Assembly (NCBI GenBank): GCA_964234715.1
Contig: OZ174279.1
Source of the DNA: Podarcis melisellensis
Taxonomy: Eukaryota
Reading direction: 5' to 3' (one strand)
Length of the DNA stretch: 64,000 nt
The notes beneath the pieces were generated by a model. The model saw only the letters and a program-made list of their open reading frames with translations, searched no databases and had not been told where the DNA came from. Below are positions 3,124 to 53,817 of this stretch, in pieces. Numbering within the stretch: the stretch's first letter is position 1; each line of letters opens with the position of its first letter. Made by a program: the position numbers and the translations under genes.

Positions 3124-5898
3124 TAAATGATGGAGGCAAAATCTGAACATGGGACTTCTTGATTCATAGCTCAGTCTCTTATCCTCTACTAGACTACTGT
3201 ACTTCACATAACCTACATAGATCTTATCCCCTCCCCCTGCCCAATTGTTTCCAAGGGGGGGTAGGGAATGAGCCTGGGTTTAATTTTCAATAGTTCAGAA
3301 TGTGAACTCCTAGTTGAGTGTTAATCTCTTTCCATGTGAGGGGAAATATAAATGGGGTTATAGCATGGGAAAGCATACAAATCTGAGGGCTGCTCCTGAT
3401 CTCTCTCTGGAGAAAATCTAGGATGAAAGAGTAATAACTTTCTGAGGTGATCCAATTTTTCAGTTCTTAACAGATGATATAGGGTTATTGCAAAAAGGAA
3501 GCTGCAGAGAGCAAGCGAAACAGGAGTACTTGCTATACAGAAGTTAAGTTTGGCAGAGTCAAATAGTCAGCCTTTATTTTAAAAAGAACTAACACTGTGT
3601 GTGCATGTTCACAGCTTTTATTCATACTTTGGAGCTCTCAAAGGTGTTCTGAAATGTTAAAATCCTCTGTGTGTCTGCTGCTGTTCTGTGCATCAGCTTT
3701 TAATGTTAAACCATTCAGTTTCCAGACACTCAGGTTCTAATAGTGCCATGGGTTCTTGATCTTCAAAGCAATGAACAAACAAGACGGTTGGATAGGATTT
3801 TAAAAGCTGAAAAGCACCCTGGTCACTGTTAATCCAGCTTTCCCATATTTGTCAGGAATGTTTCCTCATAGTTTTCAGTCCAAGGATCATGGACGACTTC
3901 TTCATATACTTAATTCTTAGGGCACAATCTAGAAGAGACTGATACAAGACGTTTGCTTGAAAATTCACCCAACATAAATAAATTTATGCTGGTCAACATG
4001 TCTGCTGTGCAGACAATTGTGAAATCTGTTACCTGACCTGGTCATGCGTGCCTCTACCAAAGACTTCCATATCTGGGTAGGATTACCTTGCCCAGAAACA
4101 GCAGGTCCTCTACCTGAAGGTTCTGCTAGACCCTGCTCTGTCTCTTGAGGTCCTTTGTAGCTTCTGAGGCACACAGCACCTTAGCAGCTATAACTGGTCC
4201 ACCAGCTGCAACTGCTTCTGCACGGAGATAGTTAAGCCATGATTATCCATGAACTAATACTATGTAGCCACCTCAAGTGCTTTTGACTGGCTGTAATGTG
4301 TCATTGATCTGTAATAACACTTTTTGCTTGAGTAGATGGAAGGCAGTGTGAGTAGGCTCTGATTTTTGTGTGCTTGGAATGTAACCTACTGTACAAAGGT
4401 GAGAGTTGCATCCATTGTTCCACCCACTTTGCTTCTGGCCCCACCCACCCATGTGGTCCCAAGGTTGCCCACGAGTGAATGTGTCCCTTAGGTGCCAGTG
4501 CTTAGCTTGTAAAGGTCCTAAACAACTGCAGACCTATAAAGAAGCACCTTCTCCCATAACCAGTCAATGCCCTTGTCCAGGTTCCTCCAGCACTGTCCTC
4601 TAGGGAAAAGGTTTGTCAGCTGTAGCCTCCTAGCTGTGGAATTTCATCTCAAAAGGAGGCACACCTGGGGGCGAACACCACTCTTTTGGACTCCAGAGAA
4701 AATGTTTTTTATTCACTTAGACATTTCAAGTTCTATTTCTGTTCTTTTATCTGCTATAAATTTTATTTGTGATATTCCTCCATCCCCTGCCAGCTCAACC
4801 ACACCTTTTTGTAAACCATTCTGCACACCATTTTGATGAATGGCATAAGCATATTTTAAAATGCATAAATGCATTAAAGTGCTGCTGCTAGGAAGAAGTT
4901 GGACCATTTGTCATACCATGTGTCTGTATAAATACACAATGTATTAGATAGCTAGATAGTATTTTTGGAACAGAATTGTATTTTATAGTTGATTTTAAGT
5001 AAACTAAATGAAAATCCAAATGGTGACCTTCCACATTACCCACCAACTGAATTTTAGTCTTGTGCCTGTTTGATTTCTGGTGGAGAGCTGTGCGCCATTG
5101 GACAGTGTTGACATCTGAGGCAACATTTTCACCTTGCCTATTCATAGAGAGCTGCTGCTGAGTTCATGCTGTCGCTGCTCTTGGAGAGGGAGGGAATGGC
5201 CCAAGCTTTCAGGAACCAAAAGAGTCATGCATAAGTAATGCATCTCAGGCATGTTTGTTGGATTTTGTGGCATGTCCTCAGTACAAGTAAGCGCACAATG
5301 ACTGGACAGTTCAGACATGTTGCAGCCTCTTAAAAACAAATTCTAGACAAAGTTGTTTGGTGAAATAAAGGGTGACATAAATGTGCCATTTTTGAGCCAC
5401 ACATCACTGGCAAGTGTTTGAAACAGGATATTGAGCTGGTCAGCCTATGTATGCTGGAGACTCATATTTGAAGCATCCCTAATGAAAACTGCATTATTAT
5501 TATTTTTAAAAAACTATTTTTATTCAATACAACAATGTAGGGTTTTCCCCCCTGTTCCAGCAGAAATGTTTTCTTTTTCCTGATTTAGTGGAGGGCAGCG
5601 AGGTGAATCCCAATCATGCTAGAGTCAACATAGTTTTCACCCGTGATATTTCAAGAGATTGAAATGTCCCCACAGGAGTTCTTTGCCAAGACCTGTGGAT
5701 TTTCTTTTTCTTTTACAGAAGTCCTTTGTTACACTGATTCACAGCCTTAATGCATTGGGAAGTGGGGCGGGGGATGGGCATAGGTCAGAAGCAATAATAA
5801 CAATAAAAAAGGCAACTGATGCCTTTGCACGCTTCATAGACGTGGATTGAACCTGCAGACAAAGGCGTGTTTGGGGAAGCAATAATAGTCTGCTAGAG

Positions 5899-6034
5899 CA
5901 GTGTTTCCCAACCTTGTGCCTCCAGCTGTTTTTGAACTACAACTCCCATCATCCCTGACTATCAAGACCAGTGGCAAGGGATGATGGGAATTGTAGTCCA
6001 AAAACAGCTGGAGGCACAAGGTTGGGAAACACTG
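5899..6034. mobile_element. Palindromic hAT-type MITE, young copy
   Basis: Near-perfect inverted arms (CAGTGTTTCCCAACCTTGTGCCTCCAGCTGTTTTT...) and an 8-bp TSD TGCTAGAG at 5891-5898 and 6035-6042. Confidence 0.92.
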
Positions 6035-6591
6035 TGCTAGAGTGTTTCTGTCAAAAGCATTTGTTCATGTTGGTGTCCCCGTCCCTGGCTAGAGATAACT
6101 TTATTTGCAACAAGCTTGGCAGAAAAATAATAACCTGGGAACAGTATTTAGTAGAAATCATTTGGCTGTCTCCAGGTGTAGTAATAGGCAAATAAGTTCC
6201 AGAGAGAAAGGTATGTTCGAAGCAGCTGCATGCTGTTTCCCATTGTAGTCAGGAAGACTAAAACCTCATTGGCATTCTGCAGAGATAACAGAAGCGAATC
6301 CGGTCCATCAAACCACTTGAGCTGTCAGGAGCAACACTGGGGGCTTTTCACCCGCAGCCCACACAGGCTTTATTGTACGGAGAAAGCGATTTAAGTGAAT
6401 GTAATAGGAATGCAAATCCAGCAGTTGCACTTCGTTGCTTTAAGGGAAACCCTCTCTTGTGAATCTAGCAGTTTGCTGCTTTGCAAGGATCTGTGCGTTT
6501 TCCTTTTGAGTCTGGCGAAGTCAGGGAAGACCTTCATCTTCTCTACTGTGCATCTATCTGGACGGCTTCTAGACTGCTTCCTCAGGAGGAA

Positions 6592-6710
6592 ATGGCTTTC
6601 ACCTCATGGCAAATTTTGTCCCCCATGCAGTGGACGCGTTGGATGTGGACAGCTGTGAGAAGCAGCGGAGACTACAGTCTCCAAGCCATGCAGCGAATCG
6701 CTGGAAATAG
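6592..6710 (+). CDS. TACC2: TACC2 alternative first coding exon encoding a TACC1-like N-terminus (MAFTSWQILSPMQWTRWMWTAVRSSGDYSLQAMQRIAGN-R), GC donor
   Basis: Strong Kozak context (gaaATGG). The peptide closely resembles the human TACC1 N-terminus as I recall it (MAFSPWQILSPVQWAKWTWSAVR). The AG|GCAAGT donor is phase 2 and joins in frame to the phase-2 acceptor at 8418 (AG+G = Arg, then SSDSEEAF). Confidence 0.8.
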
Positions 6711-7230
6711 GCAAGTCAGCCCTAGTCCTGTCTTTCAGGAAACTGTCACACCATTAAATTCATTTTATCAAAGGCCAGAAGGAAAAGCTGCCATTTGACT
6801 AGCTGAAATGCTTGCCTAAGCAGTTTTCAAGGCAATAGTGTACTACATTGTTTGACTGGATTTTTTTAAAAAAATATCCATATATATATATAATCTCCAT
6901 TTATATATATTTGTATTTCAGTGTTCCTCATCCCATTCCAGTTCATTAAAGGAAACAAGATCCATTCAGCTTTAATTCTAGAAAGACTACATCCTTGATC
7001 GATTGTCTGCTTATTTAAATTTTGTTACGCAGCAGAGACTCAGTTGAGACTTGTATTTCACCATCCCCATTAATCCATCACATCTTTATTTTATCAATGT
7101 TTCTGTTTCTGCCTTGCATATGATAACATAGGCTCCACTTTGCATCCTCATGTTTCACTTGTTTGCTGTCATCATATTCCTTCTGGATTATTGTTACTAA
7201 TTATTATTATTATTGTTAGGCTGCCTACCT

Positions 7231-7378
7231 CCGGTACACTCAAAGTACATTTTTCCTCCAAAGAATCCTGGGAACTGTAGTTTGTTAGGGTTTCTGGGAG
7301 TTGTAGTTCTTTGTGGGGTAAACAACAATTCCCAGGGTTTTTTTTGGGGGGGTGCTTTAAACATATGGTGTGTATACA
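7231..7378. mobile_element. Palindromic MITE-like repeat (CTGGGAACTGTAGTT family)
   Basis: Degenerate inverted arms with GGGAACTGTAGTTT / AAACAACAATTCCCAGG cores. Confidence 0.55.
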
Positions 7379-8417
7379 GTCTAAGTTTGGGACAATGTGT
7401 TTGGTGGAAGTGTGATCTGGATAAACTGTATAGCAAGGTTCATAGATTAAAAATAAGACCTTGAATGAAAGAATTCTGATGGGAGATGGGGTCTCATTTC
7501 AGATAGTGAAATGGGCACAGAGGTTTTGGCAGGAGGAGGGTTGGTGGAGGGGAAGCAAGATTCAGGAAGATCCATCAATTTGCTTTTGAAAATATTTTAA
7601 GTTTAATTATAGAAGAGCTGCATGCATTAAGAGCATTTGTTGTGATTCTAGCTACAGTATCACCAGGGAAGTGCAATCAGGCACCTCTCTCCCAGTTTAA
7701 GGAAAGGAATTTGTTTAATTTGCCTGAATAGCTATTGATAGTACACAACTTGCGAGTGAGCTGCAAATACAGATAGCATTTGTGGTATGAAGTAAGGAGG
7801 CTAGTGTGAAAAATGGGAATTCCCCATCACCCTAAATGGTGCCTCCCCACCCCATCTGAAAGGCTAGGCAGCACCCAATGTTACTCAAAGCCTGTGTTCT
7901 CTTGTTTTGTAGGAACTCACACTCTGCTGCATATCAAGGTAGATTGAACCGGGATTTAAAAGAGCTTTATGCAACTCTCTTAAGGGTATTTCCTTATTAG
8001 GTTTGCTTGCGCTTGTGCCAAGGAAAATTCCAGCATCTCATTGAAAGGTCCCATTGGCATTGTTTTAGTTTGCCTGGGCTGAAGCCTCCTTTATGTTGAA
8101 AAGGCAGGCTTTTCCAGGCAGTATTTTCTTTATCCTGTGTGCATGTTTGCTTTTGTGACGCCTTGACATCTTTCATGTCAGTATTTCTTCAGGGTGAACC
8201 TGGAAACATGATATTCTGTTCCAGAAATCATGCTGCAAAAGGAAGCTCAATATCTCTGAGAAATGCAGAGGTATTCTGGCCTCAAATAGAGCGCTCTGCG
8301 TTTTCCAAGTATCGTTTGTTGTGTTCTGTTTTGTGCAGGTGATTTTGAAGAAGTATCCTGTATGTCCCTTTCTTTTCTTTTCTTTTTTTACACCTGTATT
8401 TCTTTGTTTGTGTCCAG

Positions 8418-8566
8418 GAGTTCAGACTCTGAAGAAGCCTTTGAGACACCAGAATCTACAACTCCTGTGAAGGCTGCACCTGTGCTACCACAACCACCGC
8501 CAGAAGTTGCAGTGTTTGACATAGAGGAACAGGAAGTAAGACCTCAGCTTCCATCCGAGGACACAG
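8418..8566 (+). CDS. TACC2: TACC2 exon (SSDSEEAFETPESTTPVKAAP...PSEDT)
   Basis: Polypyrimidine tract and tccag| acceptor; G|gtaac donor. SSDSEEAFETPESTTPVK is a hallmark TACC2 motif. Confidence 0.95.
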
Positions 8567-11267
8567 GTAACAATTACACAATGCATGGGATGGGCTTCTC
8601 AGAGTATTTTGGTCACCAGGGCATAGCTCCCTCTGCTTCCTGCAAATGATGGTGTCATTTAGTTTTTTTTGAGATGAAGCTGCATGTTTTAAGTTTGGAG
8701 ACAGTCTCTAAGGAAAGGATCAGAGCTGTAAAATTTCTTGGGAGCTCTGAAGGAGCTGGGTAGCACCCCCCCAAAAAAAATCCAATAGTGGAGGAGGATC
8801 TGTTGGAGTGTTAATGGTATAAACCTCCATGTTTTGCTCAGCCTGTATATATGTTTAAATAAACCACATATCACAAAATTGGCACAAACCTTCTGTGAAC
8901 CTCTTCTAAAAGAAACTGAAACCTGAATTCATGCTGCACCCCTGAGGGTAACACTATGAACCCAGCTGCTGGTTTTTCTGTTGAACTGGAGTTCTCCTCC
9001 CATCCCTCTTGTGCCACAGTGACTAGATGGTCTCTAAGCTATTATACTATTTTAATCCACTATGGGACTCCACCTACTCACTACTTGGCTTCTTCAGTAG
9101 ATATACAGAATAGAGGCTAAGGAGTCAGTCCCTGCATATTTTCTTGCAGCACAGCATCCACAGACTACACTACTAGTATTTTGTGTGTTGTACAAGCTTA
9201 TACCAACTTGCAAAGTCTTAGGACAGTAATTTTGGTATCTCCTACTTAGAACCACCAAGCTGTGGCTGTAAAGATAAGGCACCAGAAATTGTGGGCTCAC
9301 TGTTGTGCTCTTTATTCCAGCAGCAAACCTCTGATATCAGTAGAAGCCACTCAAGAAGTTAGTGCTGAATGTCTGGGCACATCTCAGTTGCTTGGGACAT
9401 GGGAGAAGGCTAATGGTCTTAGTCAGATATCCTTAGTTTTCTCTCTAAAGCTCAAGGAAGTCAGGATAAACTAGTCAAAGCAGGCAGCTGTACATGATTT
9501 GGTTACATCTCCTTGATGCGTGTGCACAGGCTTTTTTAAGGATCAGCATCATTTGTTCACATTTTATATGATTACTACAAGAAAGACATGCAGCGGTGGC
9601 ATGCAAACACACAAAGTGTGAAGAGGCCTTTTACTATTGGGATTTTCCAGCAGGATACACATACCACCCCCTGTTTATCATTTGTCTTTTCCACGTTTCA
9701 CATAGCTTTGTATTTATTGTTATCTGAACAAAAAAGAAGTCAATTTCCACCATTTGCCAGAGAAATGTAAATGAGGAAGGAAGATCACATATGCTAAATA
9801 GGATTTGGAGTGCAGTCTTTAATTACAGAACTAGACTGTAATTCATTCTAAACTCCCTGATTCTTCACATCCTTTTTGGCTTCCCCTCTGTCTCTTTTTC
9901 TTCAGTCCCCCTCTCCTCTCATTCCACCTGCCCACCCTTAGGGGAAAGTGCCTCTGCCTGTAGTTACTATAATGCACTGTGCTATATTCATAGTTGTATA
10001 CTTTGAAAATTCTCCTGAGATAAAGGAAGTAACCTGGACTTGCTCTACAAAGCACAATGTTTTCATGTTTCAGTTATGTTTTATAACACCCCTATTTTTT
10101 TACCTTTACCCTGTGGTCCTTTTGGAGGATCTCCTATTACTGGTTAAATAGGTTAAATAGCGCAGTCAGTACAGCATAAGACTCTATCTCAGGCATGCCC
10201 ACTTGGAGCCACATGTTGAAGGCAGCTCTGTTGCAAAGCTCTTGATGCAAAAACTCATGTTTTTGCCTTGGTGACCATCTCAGTTCCCAAAGTCTAGTAT
10301 GTTCTTTGCCAGACTCTATGTGTAAGATGTATATGTTCCTTAATGCAACAGCGAAACTCCAGCCTCTGCAATTAAATGTCATGAGCAGCAAAATGCCTTT
10401 GTTGAGTCTGCTTTGAAGTTAAAGGGCAACATTCCTTTCATTTCTGACTCAGTTCTGGTGTCAAAAGGCTAGGGTGTAAAGAAGCTTTCTATAGCCACAA
10501 AGCTGCATTGTTTGATCATTTGAGTCTCCCTGCAATAGCCCTTCTGCCAGATTTTCCTCTCTACATTAATACATGTCACAGGGTTCTTACAGTGGTGTCA
10601 TAATGCTATAGTTAACAAAAGCCCACATTTTCTAAGCCTTGCATGCACTCCTAAAGCTGTAGTTACATGCACCGTAAATGACTCTGGAATAGGCTAGTAG
10701 ATGACTTATAGAATTGGGCAATTTGTATCTTCTTTTTTTAGTAATAATTTGAGTAACCTGTTGTGAGTGTGGAGGAATGGTTTGAGAAGTCACATTTTTG
10801 CTTGTTTCATCTGACAGGAATGGGGAACCACTCAGCTGGTTTGGGCCAAATTTGGTGCTCTCCAAGCTGGTTGTCAGGCAGTTGGAAAGCACTGAGCAAG
10901 GGACTTGGACAGGTGGGGCAGCACAGCTTACCTGTCAACCATTTGACATCATAAGGACATTGGGTGATTATCTGGAGGATAGTTTCCCCCCACCATCAAA
11001 GTTGGCCCACAGAGGAGTGAAAAGGATCTGGCTTGCCATGCCAAAATTGTCACTCACTCTTGCATTAGGTTAATCCATAGTTTAACAAAAATTATGATTT
11101 AATGCATATACGTGCTTCGCTCCTCTCACGCTGCTGACTGTGCCCTGTAAGGGAGGAAACAAGCCACAGTCTGGCTTGCCTGCGGAAGCCCAGGATCGGG
11201 GCTTGTTTCCTCCAAACCAGCCATGAGTGGTAAGCCAAGGACAACACTTATGTTAAACTATGGCTTA

Positions 11268-14385: not shown

Positions 14386-14998
14386 CATCATGGAACTCTA
14401 AAGTGGCATTGATCCCTTAGCTTAGGTTTTGCCCTAGACCTGCTGAGCTTTAGCAAGGCTGCTGCTGCTTCATCTGCCCACAAACTGTGCCCTGGCTAAA
14501 ACTTCCATCTGTCCTTTTCTCTTTCAGTTGAATTTAGACCCTATGATTAACCCTCAAATTTCTCTAAGTTTTGTCATCTTTTCCATGTAAATAAATGAAA
14601 TCCGAAAGTTTAATCTGCAGCTATATTCACATAACCACAATTCCTTACTGGAATATTGAAATAAGTTGTTAATACTCTTCTGGCTTTGCCCTGCATGGGG
14701 TCCAATGGGCTTCCTTGGACCCCATGCAGAGTAAAATAATTGCCAGAGTGTTGAAGGGAAAACTTGGGCATCTTATCCACTGGGTGTTCAAATGCTGACA
14801 GCTAGTAATCACCATTAGAAATTTGTTCTTTATGCCCTATTTTCTGCTTGGTGGTAGAATGGAAGTAGAAATGTAATTGTTTCTGCCAATGGAGGTGCGG
14901 CTACAATATATGATTGTGTAGAGATAATAGTGTACCCAGCCAATAGCTATTTGAAGTTAGACCTTCCTGACGGATCACTTTCTCCTTTCCCCCCCTAG

Positions 14999-16319
14999 GG
15001 TTTTATTCGGATACAGTCTCAGTAGCTGATGTTTCACATAGCGAATCGGTCGAAGAAAGCCCATTCCACCCTCCTCCCCATTCATTTTCTACTGTTTTTG
15101 ATGAGGACAAGCCCATCGCTAGTAGCGGGACTTACAACTTAGACTTTGATAGTATCGAGGTTGCGGATTCTTTGAAAACTGCTGACTCCAGCTCTCTGGA
15201 CACAAGAAGCTGTGACACCAAGTCACATGTTCGAAGAAAATCCACAGACTCTGTTCCAATTTCCAGGTCAACTTTGTCTCGGTCCCTTAGCTTGCAAGCT
15301 GGTGATTTTGATGGATCATCTTTTCTTGGCAATAGCGAGGCAGCAGGTTCAGCAACAGATACATTTTGTACCGGTTCAAGCAGTGCTTCCAGTACTCTTA
15401 AGCGCACAAAGAAGCCTAGGCCAGCTTCCTTAAAGAAAAAACCGTTGGCCAAAAAACCTCCAGATGTCCCACCGGTGAAAGAGCCAGAATCATCTGACAT
15501 CAACCAAGATTCCGTTGCCTCAAGTGAAGAAAAAGTGTCTGAGGAGAGGTTGGGGCTGACAGAACTTGAGTGCCCAGAGCCTGTCCAAACTGCTGCCGAA
15601 AAAGGGGAGCCCTCTGAGGGCCAGGCAGCAGCTTGTCCGTTTGACCCAACTAACGTTGATGAGATTAGCACATTTGGTGCTGGAGACAGCAAAATACAGG
15701 ACTCTCCTCCTGCTAGCAAGAAACCTCCACCTCTTACGACGGCACCGGAAGCTGTGGAGGTGACCCCATCAGACACTGGGGGACAGGAAGATCCTCCAGT
15801 GAAAGGCTTATCTGTGAGGCTGGAATTCGATTATTCTGAGGAAAAAGGCAGCAGCGAAGAGCAACACGAAGGCTCGCCTCTGCCCAAAAAAGTGGGCAAA
15901 AAGCCTGGTGCCAAAATGCCACTGAGGAGGCCAAAGACTAAAAAGGCTGGGGAGAAACTTGACAATGCCCCCACCACCCCAACCAAGGCCCCTGTGGATC
16001 CAAATGAGATTCCTGTTCCCAAAGGCTCTTATACTTTTGATATCGACAAATGGGATGATCCCAACTTCAACCCGTTTTCTTCCACTTGCAAAATGCAAGA
16101 CTCTCCTAAATTGCCTCAGCAAACAACAGCGGCGTACAGTTTCAATCCGGATGTGTGTGAGGACTCTATTGACCCTTTCAAGCCTTCCTTGAAGGTAGCT
16201 AGCTCTCCCACAAAGTCTCCAGCCTCCTTTGAGATACCAGCTAATGCCAGTGAGATCAATGGAACGGAAGGGGACAGCCTAAATAAACCAGCAAAAAAGA
16301 AGAAGACCCCACTCAAGAC
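14999..16319 (+). CDS. TACC2: TACC2 large exon (1321 nt): SDP repeats and basic NLS-like clusters
   Basis: ccctag| acceptor and AC|gtaagt donor. Encodes FDEDKPIASSGTYNLDFD, RRKSTDSVPISRSTLSRSLSLQA, VRLEFDYSE, KGSYTFDIDKWDDPNFNPF and PAKKKKTPLKT, all TACC2 signatures. Corresponds to ORF 15172..16323. Confidence 0.97.
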
Positions 16320-16402
16320 GTAAGTCAGAATGTAGAAAAATTCATATGCAATATAAGATCCCCCCCCCCGCCAAAATGATAGTGCTTCTACACTTTCTTA
16401 TA

Positions 16403-31390: not shown

Positions 31391-31428
31391 GATTAGATGA
31401 ATTAATAAAGGATAAGGTTATAAAAGGC

Positions 31429-31601
31429 NNNNNNNNNNNNNNNNNNNNNNNNNNNNNNNNNNNNNNNNNNNNNNNNNNNNNNNNNNNNNNNNNNNNNNNN
31501 NNNNNNNNNNNNNNNNNNNNNNNNNNNNNNNNNNNNNNNNNNNNNNNNNNNNNNNNNNNNNNNNNNNNNNNNNNNNNNNNNNNNNNNNNNNNNNNNNNNN
31601 N
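31429..31601. other. Assembly gap (173 N)
   Basis: Run of N within a TACC2 intron. Confidence 1.
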
Positions 31602-32164
31602 ATCTGACTGGGTTGCCCCAGCCACCAAACAAAAGTTAAAACACAGTATTAAAACAAGAATAGCATAAGATCCTAAAATGCTCATCCATATTACATATAA
31701 AAGGGCAGATCCATCTCAAACCACCCCACTAAAAATATGAGTAGATTTGACTGTGTCTTCTATATCATTGTTTTCTGGATTCTTTTCACCTGCCCCAAGG
31801 CCAGCTATGATGAAAGGCAGGATATAATTTTTTTATAAAGAAATAAATATAGTTCTGTGCCGGTGTTACAGTTCCCCATATATTTGCTGGGATCATATTC
31901 CTGACCTGTGTGGTTCGCTAGTCATCCATCAGTGTCATGTGGAACCAGACCATGTAGCAGTGACAACCACCCTACGCAAGTAATTGTTTCATTGTATGTG
32001 ATGTTTACTATTATTAATAAGAATTAATAATTATTATTAAGAACTTTCGGATTAAAATGTGATTTAATGCAAAAGTATAGGCTGTGAGATAGGCATAACT
32101 CTCCATCGCTCTATGTATTGGTTTTGCTAGCAAACTGAAAGCATGGTTCTTTATTGTATCTCAG

Positions 32165-33306: not shown

Positions 33307-33369
<63 letters not shown>

Positions 33370-33430
33370 TTATATTAATTAGAGAGCAGTGGGATATTGT
33401 TATTGTTATTAATAATAATAATAATAATAA
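33307..33430. repeat. (TAT)n microsatellite followed by (AAT)n
   Basis: Seen directly; it produces the poly-Tyr and poly-Asn in spurious ORF 33114..33443. Confidence 0.95.
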
Positions 33431-50641: not shown

Positions 50642-52108
50642 GTAAGTAATGCTTTCACCAACTTTGGCACCTGCATATGGCATTTCTTTTTTCCTTTTCT
50701 TTCTTTTTCTGTGTATTTGCCGTATCTGCTTAGAAATACCAGGCAATGATAGCCAATGTCCTTTGAAAGGATTGGCAGATTTCTGATAGCAGGCTTCATT
50801 TTAACCCCCGAAACAGGGTAAAACGACAAATATGTCATTACCAACAGACTGTGTTTCAGCGTTTTCAGTGTGTGTACAGTGACAACGGTACATAAAATTA
50901 TATACAGAAACTGTTTCTTCCACCCATGACCAATTTCATATAACCCTCTTTAATGCACATGTTTCTCCTCTTTGGGTTCTAGCCAGCTGGAGATGTACAA
51001 GCTTTAGTTGCAGGGACAACAAATTCATTTCATTGTAGTTAGTGCTGGTGTCTGAGTTCCCACTTTCGATGTCTCCCCAGAAGTGTAAGAAAAAAGAGAG
51101 CAAATCTCCACATTCTGAGATGCAGGAAGTATATCCCATTTTTGGCAATCATAGTCAAAGAGGGTTTTACTTACCATGGATACATTTGTGCTCAAAAGCG
51201 TTTACAGAAAATAAACAGCCTAAGAACGATCATATGGTGACCATGGTAAAAAAAAATATGCTATATAACACTAAGAAGTCAATAGTTAATAGTAACAGTC
51301 CCATCATGAAGACTTCTAGGGCAAGGAGGTGTGGTGTGGCAGGTGGAAACAACCTTGTGCATAGTGTTGTTTGGGGTGGGGGTTGTTATTTTGTTTGGAG
51401 CAACCACTTTTAAAAGTGAAGATCTGTGTGTTGTTTGCTGTGTTTAGCACTTCCACGAACGTAATGATTCTAAGTTTGCTGCCTCAGGTTGATGTAAGTT
51501 GAGCTCATTTTCTATCAACAGGAAGCCTAATCAGTATTGCTGAATTAATAACTGCACTGCATTGGAATAAGCAAGTTTCTTAGAGAACGGAAGGCAATTC
51601 CCAGGCAGAAACATTTCTGTTGTGTTTAGTGCCTGCTTCTGTTCCAAAGGAGAAAAGCCAAACTGCACTTCTTTACTTTGTTTAAAACCTGCTTCCCCAA
51701 CCAGGTGCCCACCACATATTTTTGATTACAACTCCCATAATCCCTGGTCATTGACTGGGGCTGATGGGAGCTATAGTGCAAAACAGTTTGAGGGCACCTG
51801 GTTGGGAAAGGCTTGTTTAGAATGTATCATGAGGAGAAATGAGGTCAATTTAGTTCTTGCATCAGAAAACAAAATAAAATTTAAAAACAAACAACCTTTT
51901 GGTTAGATGAAATTTCCAATGCAAGTTTATTTTATTAAATTCCTGTCCAGTCTTCCCTCCCAAAGGAGCCCAGTTTATGTCCCCTCTGTCATGCTCTTGC
52001 AGTATCTCATGCTAATGTTTAATATTCCCTATGAAGCACAGTGGATAATACCAATTAAAAAGTTTTCATTATTCTTACTTGTGCTCCTTCTGTAATTGTC
52101 TCCCACAG

Positions 52109-52269
52109 AGGATGAACAGAGAGAAAAATCCATGTCCCACCACACAGTCCAGCAGCTGATTATAGAAAAAGAGCAAGCATTATCAGATCTGAACTCTGTG
52201 GAAAAATCACTGGCAGATCTCTTTAGAAGATATGAAAAAATGAAAGAGGTTCTGGAAGGATTTAGGAAG
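52109..52269 (+). CDS. TACC2: TACC2 TACC-domain exon (EDEQREKS...SDLNSVEKSLADLFRRYEKMKEVLEGFRK)
   Basis: ccacag| acceptor and AAG|gtaagt donor; canonical TACC-domain sequence. Confidence 0.97.
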
Positions 52270-52571
52270 GTAAGTCACTGTGAATAAATACTTGTAGACT
52301 TGTGCCTCAGCCTGGAGGTCCACATGCAACTAAGATGTACAGATAGAGAGGTCTGTTGCACCCAGAGGCTTCTGTGTTCCTTTTAATTGACAGCCTGATT
52401 TTCATCCCTGTTTTGTGTGCAAATCACAATTCCTCCATGGAAATGACTGGAGGTGCACTTGAGGGTGAGGGGAAAGCGACTTGCCATTCGAAGCCGTGAA
52501 GTTTGATCACAAAAAATCCAGTAAAATAATTCTTGCCCTCCTATTAACTCTCCTTTTTCTTTTCACTTAAG

Positions 52572-52678
52572 AATGAAGAAGTATTAAAGAAATGCGCACA
52601 AGAGTACTTATCACGAGTAAAAAAAGAAGAGCAGCGATACCAAGCCCTCAAAATTCATGCAGAGGAAAAGCTGGACAG
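52572..52678 (+). CDS. TACC2: TACC2 TACC-domain exon ([36 protein letters not shown])
   Basis: cttaag| acceptor and AG|gtattt donor. Confidence 0.96.
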
Positions 52679-53696
52679 GTATTTTGGTAGTGGATGAGAG
52701 AAGCCCTGGTCTGTCAACCAAAAGCTTCTGTCTAATTCTCTAACCCGGTGGTGGGAATATCCAACCCATAGGCCAGTTTTGGCCTGACATTGATCCCAAA
52801 TTGATCCACAAGGCCTCTTCCCCCCACCCCCCAAACCATCGTATGTGCTGCCGGGTGTGGGGCAGGTGGAGATGCAGCTAGATTGATTGTGCTGCTGAGT
52901 TCCCTGTGGGGAACTGGATCACACAGCCACCTGTGGCAGAAAGCAGGACTTGAAGCCACCACCCAACAGCTGGTAGGCAATGACTTCAAGCCTGCTGATC
53001 AGCAGCTCTTTGCAAGCCCTGCATGGTGGTTTGAAGTTCCGACCATCATCACCTGATGTCATTATGATGTCAACTGATTGGCAACCTTGCTCATCTGTCA
53101 CAGTTGACTCATGAAGGGTAGAGGAGATAAGAATCTGGCCTGAACAGGTTCCCCTTCCCTGCTCTAGCCTCAGCTAATTTTCATATATTTGCCTCTTTTG
53201 TATTATTTATTCTGAAAGTCATGAGTGGAGGAGGTCCATATATATTGCTGAATCCCTGTGATTCCTGCTCTGTCTTCTGTTCCATCTTCAGCTTCTAAGG
53301 TTTCACTAGACATTGTCTCCATGATTAGAAGGACCATTTTCACAGCCAAAAAAATCCCTTTTTCAAATTGTGCAAACTCAGTTCTGCATTCAGTGGCAAG
53401 TTTTGTACTTGCATAGTATGATCACTGCATAACCACAGCTCTGTTTTATTATAAATTTCAGATTGACTCATGATTGTGTGTTATGAGTCACAACGATGCA
53501 AATTCCAGCCCCCTCCATTATAAACAATGTGTGTGAAATGTTGTCATGTTTAAGTAGCTCTCAAGTGTGACTTTTCCAAGGTCAAGCAGGTACATGGACC
53601 CACTAGTGTGCCTCCATGTGTCAGTGTTGAGAGTGTATACAAAAAGCAAGGCAAACCCTCCACGGCCTGCATTCTTAATGAGCTGTGTTTTCACAG

Positions 53697-53817
53697 AGCC
53701 AATGCTGAAATTGCACAAGTCCGTGGCAAGGCTCAACAAGAACAGGCAGCTTACCAAGCCAGTCTCCGTAAAGAGCAGCTGAAGGTGGATGCATTGGAAA
53801 GAACACTGGAACAAAAG
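53697..53817 (+). CDS. TACC2: TACC2 TACC-domain exon ([40 protein letters not shown])
   Basis: tcacag| acceptor and AAG|gtacac donor. Confidence 0.96.

Follow-up and report, generated by a model that had tools for sequence, protein, structure and literature searches.

TACC proteins have mostly been studied through their C-terminal coiled coil. U2-type GC-AG introns account for about 0.5-1% of vertebrate introns. In humans, short TACC2 isoforms are produced from internal promoters (NM_001291879 and others), with alternative 5' exons that lead to shorter, N-terminally different proteins sharing the body from SSDSEEAFETPE to the TACC domain (PMC6143958; PMC5658375). The main annotated start of TACC1 is its exon 1 (MAFSPWQILSPVQWA[KR]WTWSAVRGGG..., as found in RefSeq proteins of birds, platypus and rodents), in which the start codon is at the first coding position and which ends in phase 2 at AG/GCAAGTC before an exon starting SSDSE..FETPE. 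The locus described here, in the lizard Podarcis melisellensis, resembles both systems. Its putative start at 6592-6710 has the layout of TACC1 exon 1 and would lead into the same TACC2 body as the short human isoforms, although neither a TACC1-like N-terminus nor a GC donor is described for the latter in those two papers. We consider it probable that 6592-6710 is a functional and ancient alternative 5' coding exon of TACC2, spliced by a GC-AG intron to the SSDSEEAFETPE exon. As a type of feature, an alternative 5' coding exon with a GC-AG intron is ordinary, and it involves no new kind of biology.

The window, that is, the whole stretch of 64,000 nucleotides analysed (contig OZ174279.1, assembly GCA_964234715.1), was assigned to a gene by three comparisons. 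Matches to TACC_C (Pfam PF05010) are found downstream of the exon on the same strand at 52108-52269, 52569-52679 and 53689-53817, each with an E value of 1e-15 to 1e-16, and the three exons cover consecutive profile positions 57-186. The peptide SSDSEEAFETPESTTPVK, encoded at 8421-8474, is identical to a phosphopeptide whose sequence has been given for human TACC2 (O95359; PMC12518468). Finally, a large exon at about 14990-16323 shows 54.5% identity over 233 aa to a TACC2-type model of the langur Pygathrix nigripes, which is not a named full-length TACC2, and 29% over 110 aa to Passer TACC1. Taken together, these matches indicate that what lies in the window is a squamate TACC2 gene, represented by its 3' two-thirds, which agrees with the gene named in the original prediction. 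The proposed exon and its downstream partner comprise the following features:

6592-6710, + strand: coding part of the putative alternative 5' exon (ATG, 38 codons and a final AG; phase 2 end)
6711-6716, + strand: GC donor GCAAGT, consensus everywhere but at +2 (AG/GCAAGT at 6710/6711)
6711-8417, + strand: proposed GC-AG intron of 1707 nt, set by donor and acceptor
8418-8566, + strand: next TACC2 exon, 149 nt, with donor CAG/GTAACA; expressed (contigs from four runs) and matched in tblastn by the TACC2 model of Pygathrix

The ATG at 6592-6594 lies in the context gaggaaATGG, with G at both -3 and +4, and opens an ORF whose 39 codons (MAFTSWQILSPMQWTRWMWTAVRSSGDYSLQAMQRIAGN) lead into AG at 6709-6710; the 3' end of the exon is ...GGAAATAG. 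By translation and by its homologues, the encoded module is a Trp-rich, TACC1-like N-terminus, and its N-terminal tryptic peptide is (Ac-)AFTSWQILSPMQWTR. On the other side of the proposed intron, an extended run of pyrimidines leads up to cag at 8415-8417 (acceptor tttctttgtttgtgtccag; ...ttgtttgtgtccag/G, where the first exon base is 8418), and the exon begins GAGTTCAGAC. The junction in the window therefore reads AAT AG/GCAAGTC ... cag/G AGT TCA GAC, in which AG plus the G at 8418 form a split Arg codon followed by the phosphopeptide, with R-SSDSEEAFETPE in frame. The start codon, ORF, GC donor and acceptor phase had all been proposed beforehand and proved correct, with an identical 39-codon translation.

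The intron appears to belong to the U2-type GC-AG class, since it combines GC at +1/+2 and an otherwise consensus donor with an AG acceptor preceded by a pyrimidine tract, and is kept in relatives. As in the conserved members of this class, the consensus is complete at -2, -1 and +3 to +6 and the polypyrimidine acceptor is strong. Two points distinguish it: the GC donor is retained in two paralogs, and the exon end is wrongly placed in ab initio models. According to the proposed mechanism, translation would start at ATG 6592 and the phase 2 end of the exon would be joined, by U2-type GC-AG splicing from 6710/6711 to 8417/8418, onto the SSDSEEAFETPE exon. The product would be a short TACC2 isoform in which a Trp-rich, probably helical N-terminus of 39 residues replaces the N-terminal region of the long isoform.

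A phmmer search with the 39 residues against 1.84e9 (1.84 billion) representative proteins gave 25 matches at E<=1e-3, almost all of them beginning with the first residue of an ORF of TACC1 or TACC2 type; they fall into two groups. The TACC2-type group shares W.RWMWTAV.SSGD. It includes ORFs on contigs of two further squamates (P0001, P0026) and on two mammal-like contigs (P0006, P0008), a protein cluster present on hundreds of ENA/Logan contigs (P0003; probably human, and compared as a short protein string only), and the Pygathrix NCBI model KAL4699276.1 (P0005), whose N-terminus runs on into SSDSEEAFETPESTTPVKAPP and the TACC2 body. The TACC1-type group reads MAFS[PA]WQILSPVQWA[KR]WTWSAVRGGG followed by an acidic stretch, and contains named TACC1 proteins of birds, platypus and a rodent. 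In both groups, the ORFs called on unspliced DNA all read R-Q-V after the exon, which corresponds to AG/GCAAGT read through.

At the DNA level, identity to the window over about 750 nt is 80% for the squamate contig L001 and 75% for L002/L003. Their 117-nt ORF differs by four changes in L001 and seven in L002/L003, with AGGCAAGTC invariant; the conservation of ORF and GC donor looked for in other squamates is thus seen in both. Comparison of window positions 6000-7200 with the mammal-like loci L005 and L006/L007 left, as sole alignable DNA, the segment from 6589 or 6578 to 6716. The lizard-mammal match hence spans from the start codon (or 14 nt 5' of the ATG, as the L006 match starts at 6578) to the 3' end of the donor hexamer. 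All five loci compared (the window, L001, L002, L005 and L006) have 39 codons plus 2 nt free of stops and indels, a purine at -3, G at +4, and AG/GCAAGT with an invariant GCAAGT donor. Between lizard and mammal-like loci, dS is 1.0-2.2 (saturated), dN about 0.27 and dN/dS 0.13-0.27, and residues 1-26 are almost fixed while the synonymous sites are saturated. The C-terminal third of the module is loosely constrained, because dN/dS between the two mammal-like loci reaches 0.52. Within squamates, dN/dS is 0.3-0.7 on very few changes and the exon dS is low, and the conserved stretch includes about 100 nt of the intron on one side and about 290 nt upstream of the exon on the other; part of the squamate constraint is therefore at the nucleotide level. 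Beyond RQV, the read-through tails of squamates bear no relation to those of mammals, which places the end of conservation at the donor.

Conservation of this kind is what marks a protein-coding exon with its end at the GC donor, and not a conserved element without coding function. Likewise, three squamates and the mammal-like loci all have the ORF with its length, ATG context and GC donor, which shows that ORF 6592-6710 is more than chance. The original prediction had the module surviving in squamate TACC2, which turned out to be too narrow: the exon is kept in mammals including a primate (the Pygathrix model, L005 and L006), so it is not a squamate peculiarity.

The start of the intron, 6711-6798, deserves a separate comment. 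In three squamates these first ~90 nt are almost as conserved as the exon, both indels within them are multiples of 3, and the read-through ORF of 56-68 aa stays open; the stretch may be a splicing-regulatory element or a product of chance. Open frames of this kind in three squamates, the two indels in multiples of 3, and one unspliced contig that crosses the donor would also suit a stand-alone protein of ~56-68 aa, made from an unspliced transcript reading through the GC site (MAFTSW...RQVSPSP...KAAI-stop). We regard such a protein as highly improbable: the squamate tails are unequal (L002 has its stop ~10 codons earlier), those of mammals are unrelated, the donor-crossing contig has the depth of the intronic background, and the exact conservation of AG/GCAAGT would be left unexplained.

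The proposed TACC2 exon finds its closest relative in TACC1, of whose exon 1 it is the counterpart. In the bird Prunella (contig L004), TACC1 exon 1 ends GGC TTC AG/GCAAGTC and the next exon starts cag/C TCG GAC TCC ACT GAT AAT TTT GAG ACC CCT GAA. Joining the two gives the annotated junction of Passer TACC1, ...LGF/SSDSTDNFETPE (GF/SSDS), and thus indicates that TACC1 intron 1 is GC-AG too; it agrees with the TACC2 intron in phase and in all nine bases of the donor, and stands before a homologous exon. The alignment of the TACC1 and TACC2 modules contains 10 invariant columns (M1, A2, W6, P11, W14, W17, W19, A21, V22 and G26). There are also clear differences between them: TACC2 has W.RWMW where TACC1 has W.[KR]WTW; after GGG, TACC1 alone has an acidic Gly/Glu/Asp-rich tail of 20-45 residues, whereas TACC2 has a fixed 13-residue tail (SGD.SL..Q....); and the acceptors are one codon apart (R-SSDS in TACC2, S-SDS in TACC1). 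The homology to TACC1 exon 1 that had been suggested is upheld by the common motif MAF..WQ.LSP.QW.RW.W.AV, the phase, the AG/GCAAGTC donor and the following SSDSE..FETPE exon.

The presence of the module and of a GC-AG intron in bird TACC1 as well as in TACC2 makes them common to both paralogs rather than a peculiarity of squamates. In this sense, the GC donor itself appears to be part of the inheritance that TACC1 and TACC2 have in common. The sharing of module, intron position, phase and GC donor points to descent of all four from a common ancestor. The earlier proposal that the Trp-rich module is older than the TACC1/TACC2 duplication, and survives in squamates, can consequently be kept as to age, with which the shared module and GC-AG intron fit, while its restriction to squamates cannot.

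Gene models deal poorly with this exon. KAL4699276.1 links the same exon to the TACC2 body via a GT donor further downstream and not via the GC donor. In this Pygathrix model, the exon is longer by 21 codons, up to an apparent in-phase GT donor (...GAW/) located 63 nt downstream, and the junction is ...GKRQVISVYLVSVALDGAVLGAW/SSDSEE. The downstream GT donor is deduced for primates alone, from protein models, and a counterpart is found in neither L005 nor L006; of the two donors, GC alone occurs in every lineage compared. The Bos mutus TACC1 model (P0153) also reads through the GC donor and takes a different splice point (SLSFRQVHASDSEG), and the GC read-through in both P0153 and KAL4699276.1 is likely to be an annotation error. 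The expectation that gene finders would stumble on the GC donor was thus borne out in the Pygathrix TACC2 and Bos mutus TACC1 models.

Further protein searches, all of them length-limited, added little to these models. When a 613-aa bird TACC1 was used as anchor and residues 1-40 were scored, only TACC1 appeared among the best 120 of 500 matches. The 364-aa Pygathrix model, compared with proteins of 200-637 aa, found only itself and no named protein with the primate form, and the 105-aa lizard ORF, compared with proteins of 58-184 aa, found P0001 alone. Within the size ranges covered (58-184 aa and 200-637 aa, against ~1000 aa for full-length TACC2), no stored protein has a spliced form of the exon. 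Regarding the literature, this N-terminus is not mentioned in the papers on TACC2 promoters (PMC5658375; PMC6143958) or in that on Xenopus TACC2 (PMC5063610), and the N-terminal peptide of TACC1 gave no match in the texts searched.

Lizard RNA was available as assembled contigs from runs X1, X2, X5 and X6 (two related organisms, three studies), placed on 5.9 kb of the window. TACC2 contigs of 2.1-3.7 kb from the four runs align only at 8416-8567, as expected of spliced TACC2 mRNA, and therefore confirm exon 8418-8566, whose word depth is 58-260 across the runs (114 in X6). The two extra matching bases (8416-8417) imply that the upstream exon in these spliced contigs ends in AG, as does that of the human long isoform (DLSR/SSDSEE; PMC12518468). 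The 250, 266 and 853 contig letters found 5' of 8416 align nowhere in 4600-8416; therefore, the main isoform uses another upstream exon. In this expressed exon (exon 2), over 8466-8502, the related organisms of runs X1-X6 show 3-4 bases that are not those of the window, and organism B (X6) carries an in-frame ACC insertion after 8486, in a Pro-rich stretch.

The joint 6710-8418 expected from the original prediction was found in none of the contigs of the four runs, which express TACC2 strongly; contigs drop rare variants. The sole contig over the candidate exon comes from X6 (6564-6719, depth 3.5); it is unspliced through the donor and at the level of other intronic background. Exon 6592-6710 is without visible use in these four runs, which weakens the case for its use in the lizard and does not refute it. 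The same absence of RNA support, at high TACC2 expression, would be in keeping with an ancestral TACC first exon that squamates have ceased to use for protein and keep as a relic, conserved among lizards for an overlapping regulatory element (an intronic enhancer or the promoter of a non-coding transcript). The extension of squamate conservation beyond the ORF and the squamate dN/dS of 0.3-0.7, on very few changes, lean the same way. We nevertheless judge a relic unlikely, given that the ATG, frame, exact length and donor have stayed intact since the squamate-mammal split, that residues 1-26 stand nearly fixed against saturated synonymous sites, and that the lizard-mammal similarity is bounded by the ATG and the donor. 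The sequence features of the exon, its coding-type conservation and its paralogy are evident from the comparisons above; we infer that it is also transcribed, spliced and translated in the lizard.

The DNA 5' of the start codon bears on whether the proposed exon is the first or the second of its transcript. Its features are:

6300-6591, + strand: upstream block conserved in the alignment of three squamates; putative promoter and/or 5' UTR
6410-6417, + strand: octamer ATGCAAAT, ~180 nt 5' of the ATG; possible promoter element
6574-6585, + strand: acceptor-like motif ctgcttcctcag/, directly 5' of the start codon; putative 3' splice site

The upstream block contains stretches such as CATCAAACCACTTGAGCTGTCAGGAGCAACACTGGGG and TTTTCCTTTTGAGT, conserved in the window, L001 and L002, and only its last ~14 nt align with the mammal loci. 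The octamer is located at -182 from the ATG in the window, -172 in L001 and -147 in L002/L003, and is lacking at the equivalent place in the mammal contigs. ATG is absent between 6414 and 6591. The acceptor-like motif is CTTCCTCAG in the window and L001, CAGTCTCAG in L002, tttctccacag/ag in L005 and gttcttcag/cggag in L006. Use of the exon as an in-frame cassette of the long isoform can be discarded, since the 125 nt from the acceptor-like site (6586-6710) shift the frame.

It is possible, and we hold it as a tentative alternative, that the exon is coding and yet is exon 2, with a promoter further upstream, a non-coding leader and entry at the acceptor-like 6585/6586. In the three squamates and the two mammal-like loci alike, a YYYCAG motif precedes the ATG by 3-8 nt, and the DNA match of lizard with L006, starting at 6578, takes it in. 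In addition, the locus (GC 0.47) is without a CpG island, and a 125-nt exon that breaks the frame of the long isoform suits a leader that does not code. However, a CAG before an ATG can be mere start context, and the joint into 6586 is seen in no contig of the four lizard runs. Moreover, the 290 nt conserved upstream in squamates, the octamer and the lack of ATG after 6414 are as for a proximal promoter followed by a 5' UTR.

With regard to function, the module belongs to no Pfam family, nor does any Pfam family cover the TACC N-termini. AlphaFold, run on a small alignment, predicted one helix over residues 5-38 at moderate confidence, with a mean pLDDT of 68 that rises to 82 over residues 11-20, and the helical hydrophobic moment of QWTRWMWTAVR is high. 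As a guess from this model, the module might be an amphipathic helix that binds a partner or a membrane. If the exon is used, TACC1 and TACC2 would share a defined N-terminal module that can be tested for localisation or binding.

A broader proposal, which we put forward with considerable doubt, is that all amniotes, including humans, have an overlooked TACC2 isoform with a TACC1-type Trp-rich helix, that module and GC-AG intron have been kept since the duplication, and that standard models miss or mis-end the exon owing to its GC donor. Should this be true, TACC1 and TACC2 would have in the module a common functional element, as yet uncharacterised, such as an amphipathic helix for targeting or partner binding. 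Kept in two paralogs, the GC donor offers a clean case of a non-canonical splice site that has lasted long and leads ab initio gene models astray. The practical weight is mainly one of annotation, as the TACC2 models of reptiles and mammals need to be checked for this start.

Some minor features of the window were also noted. Segments 5890-6035 and 7250-7290 are copies of a short interspersed repeat on which hundreds of contigs from the four runs stack up; their summed word depth reaches ~16,000, loose ends are numerous, and false 'joints' connect the two copies, some on opposite strands. Within the TACC2 gene, there is a run of N (a gap or masked sequence) at about 31420-31620, and a long trinucleotide repeat at about 33330-33400, poly-Tyr in one frame, constitutes an intronic microsatellite.
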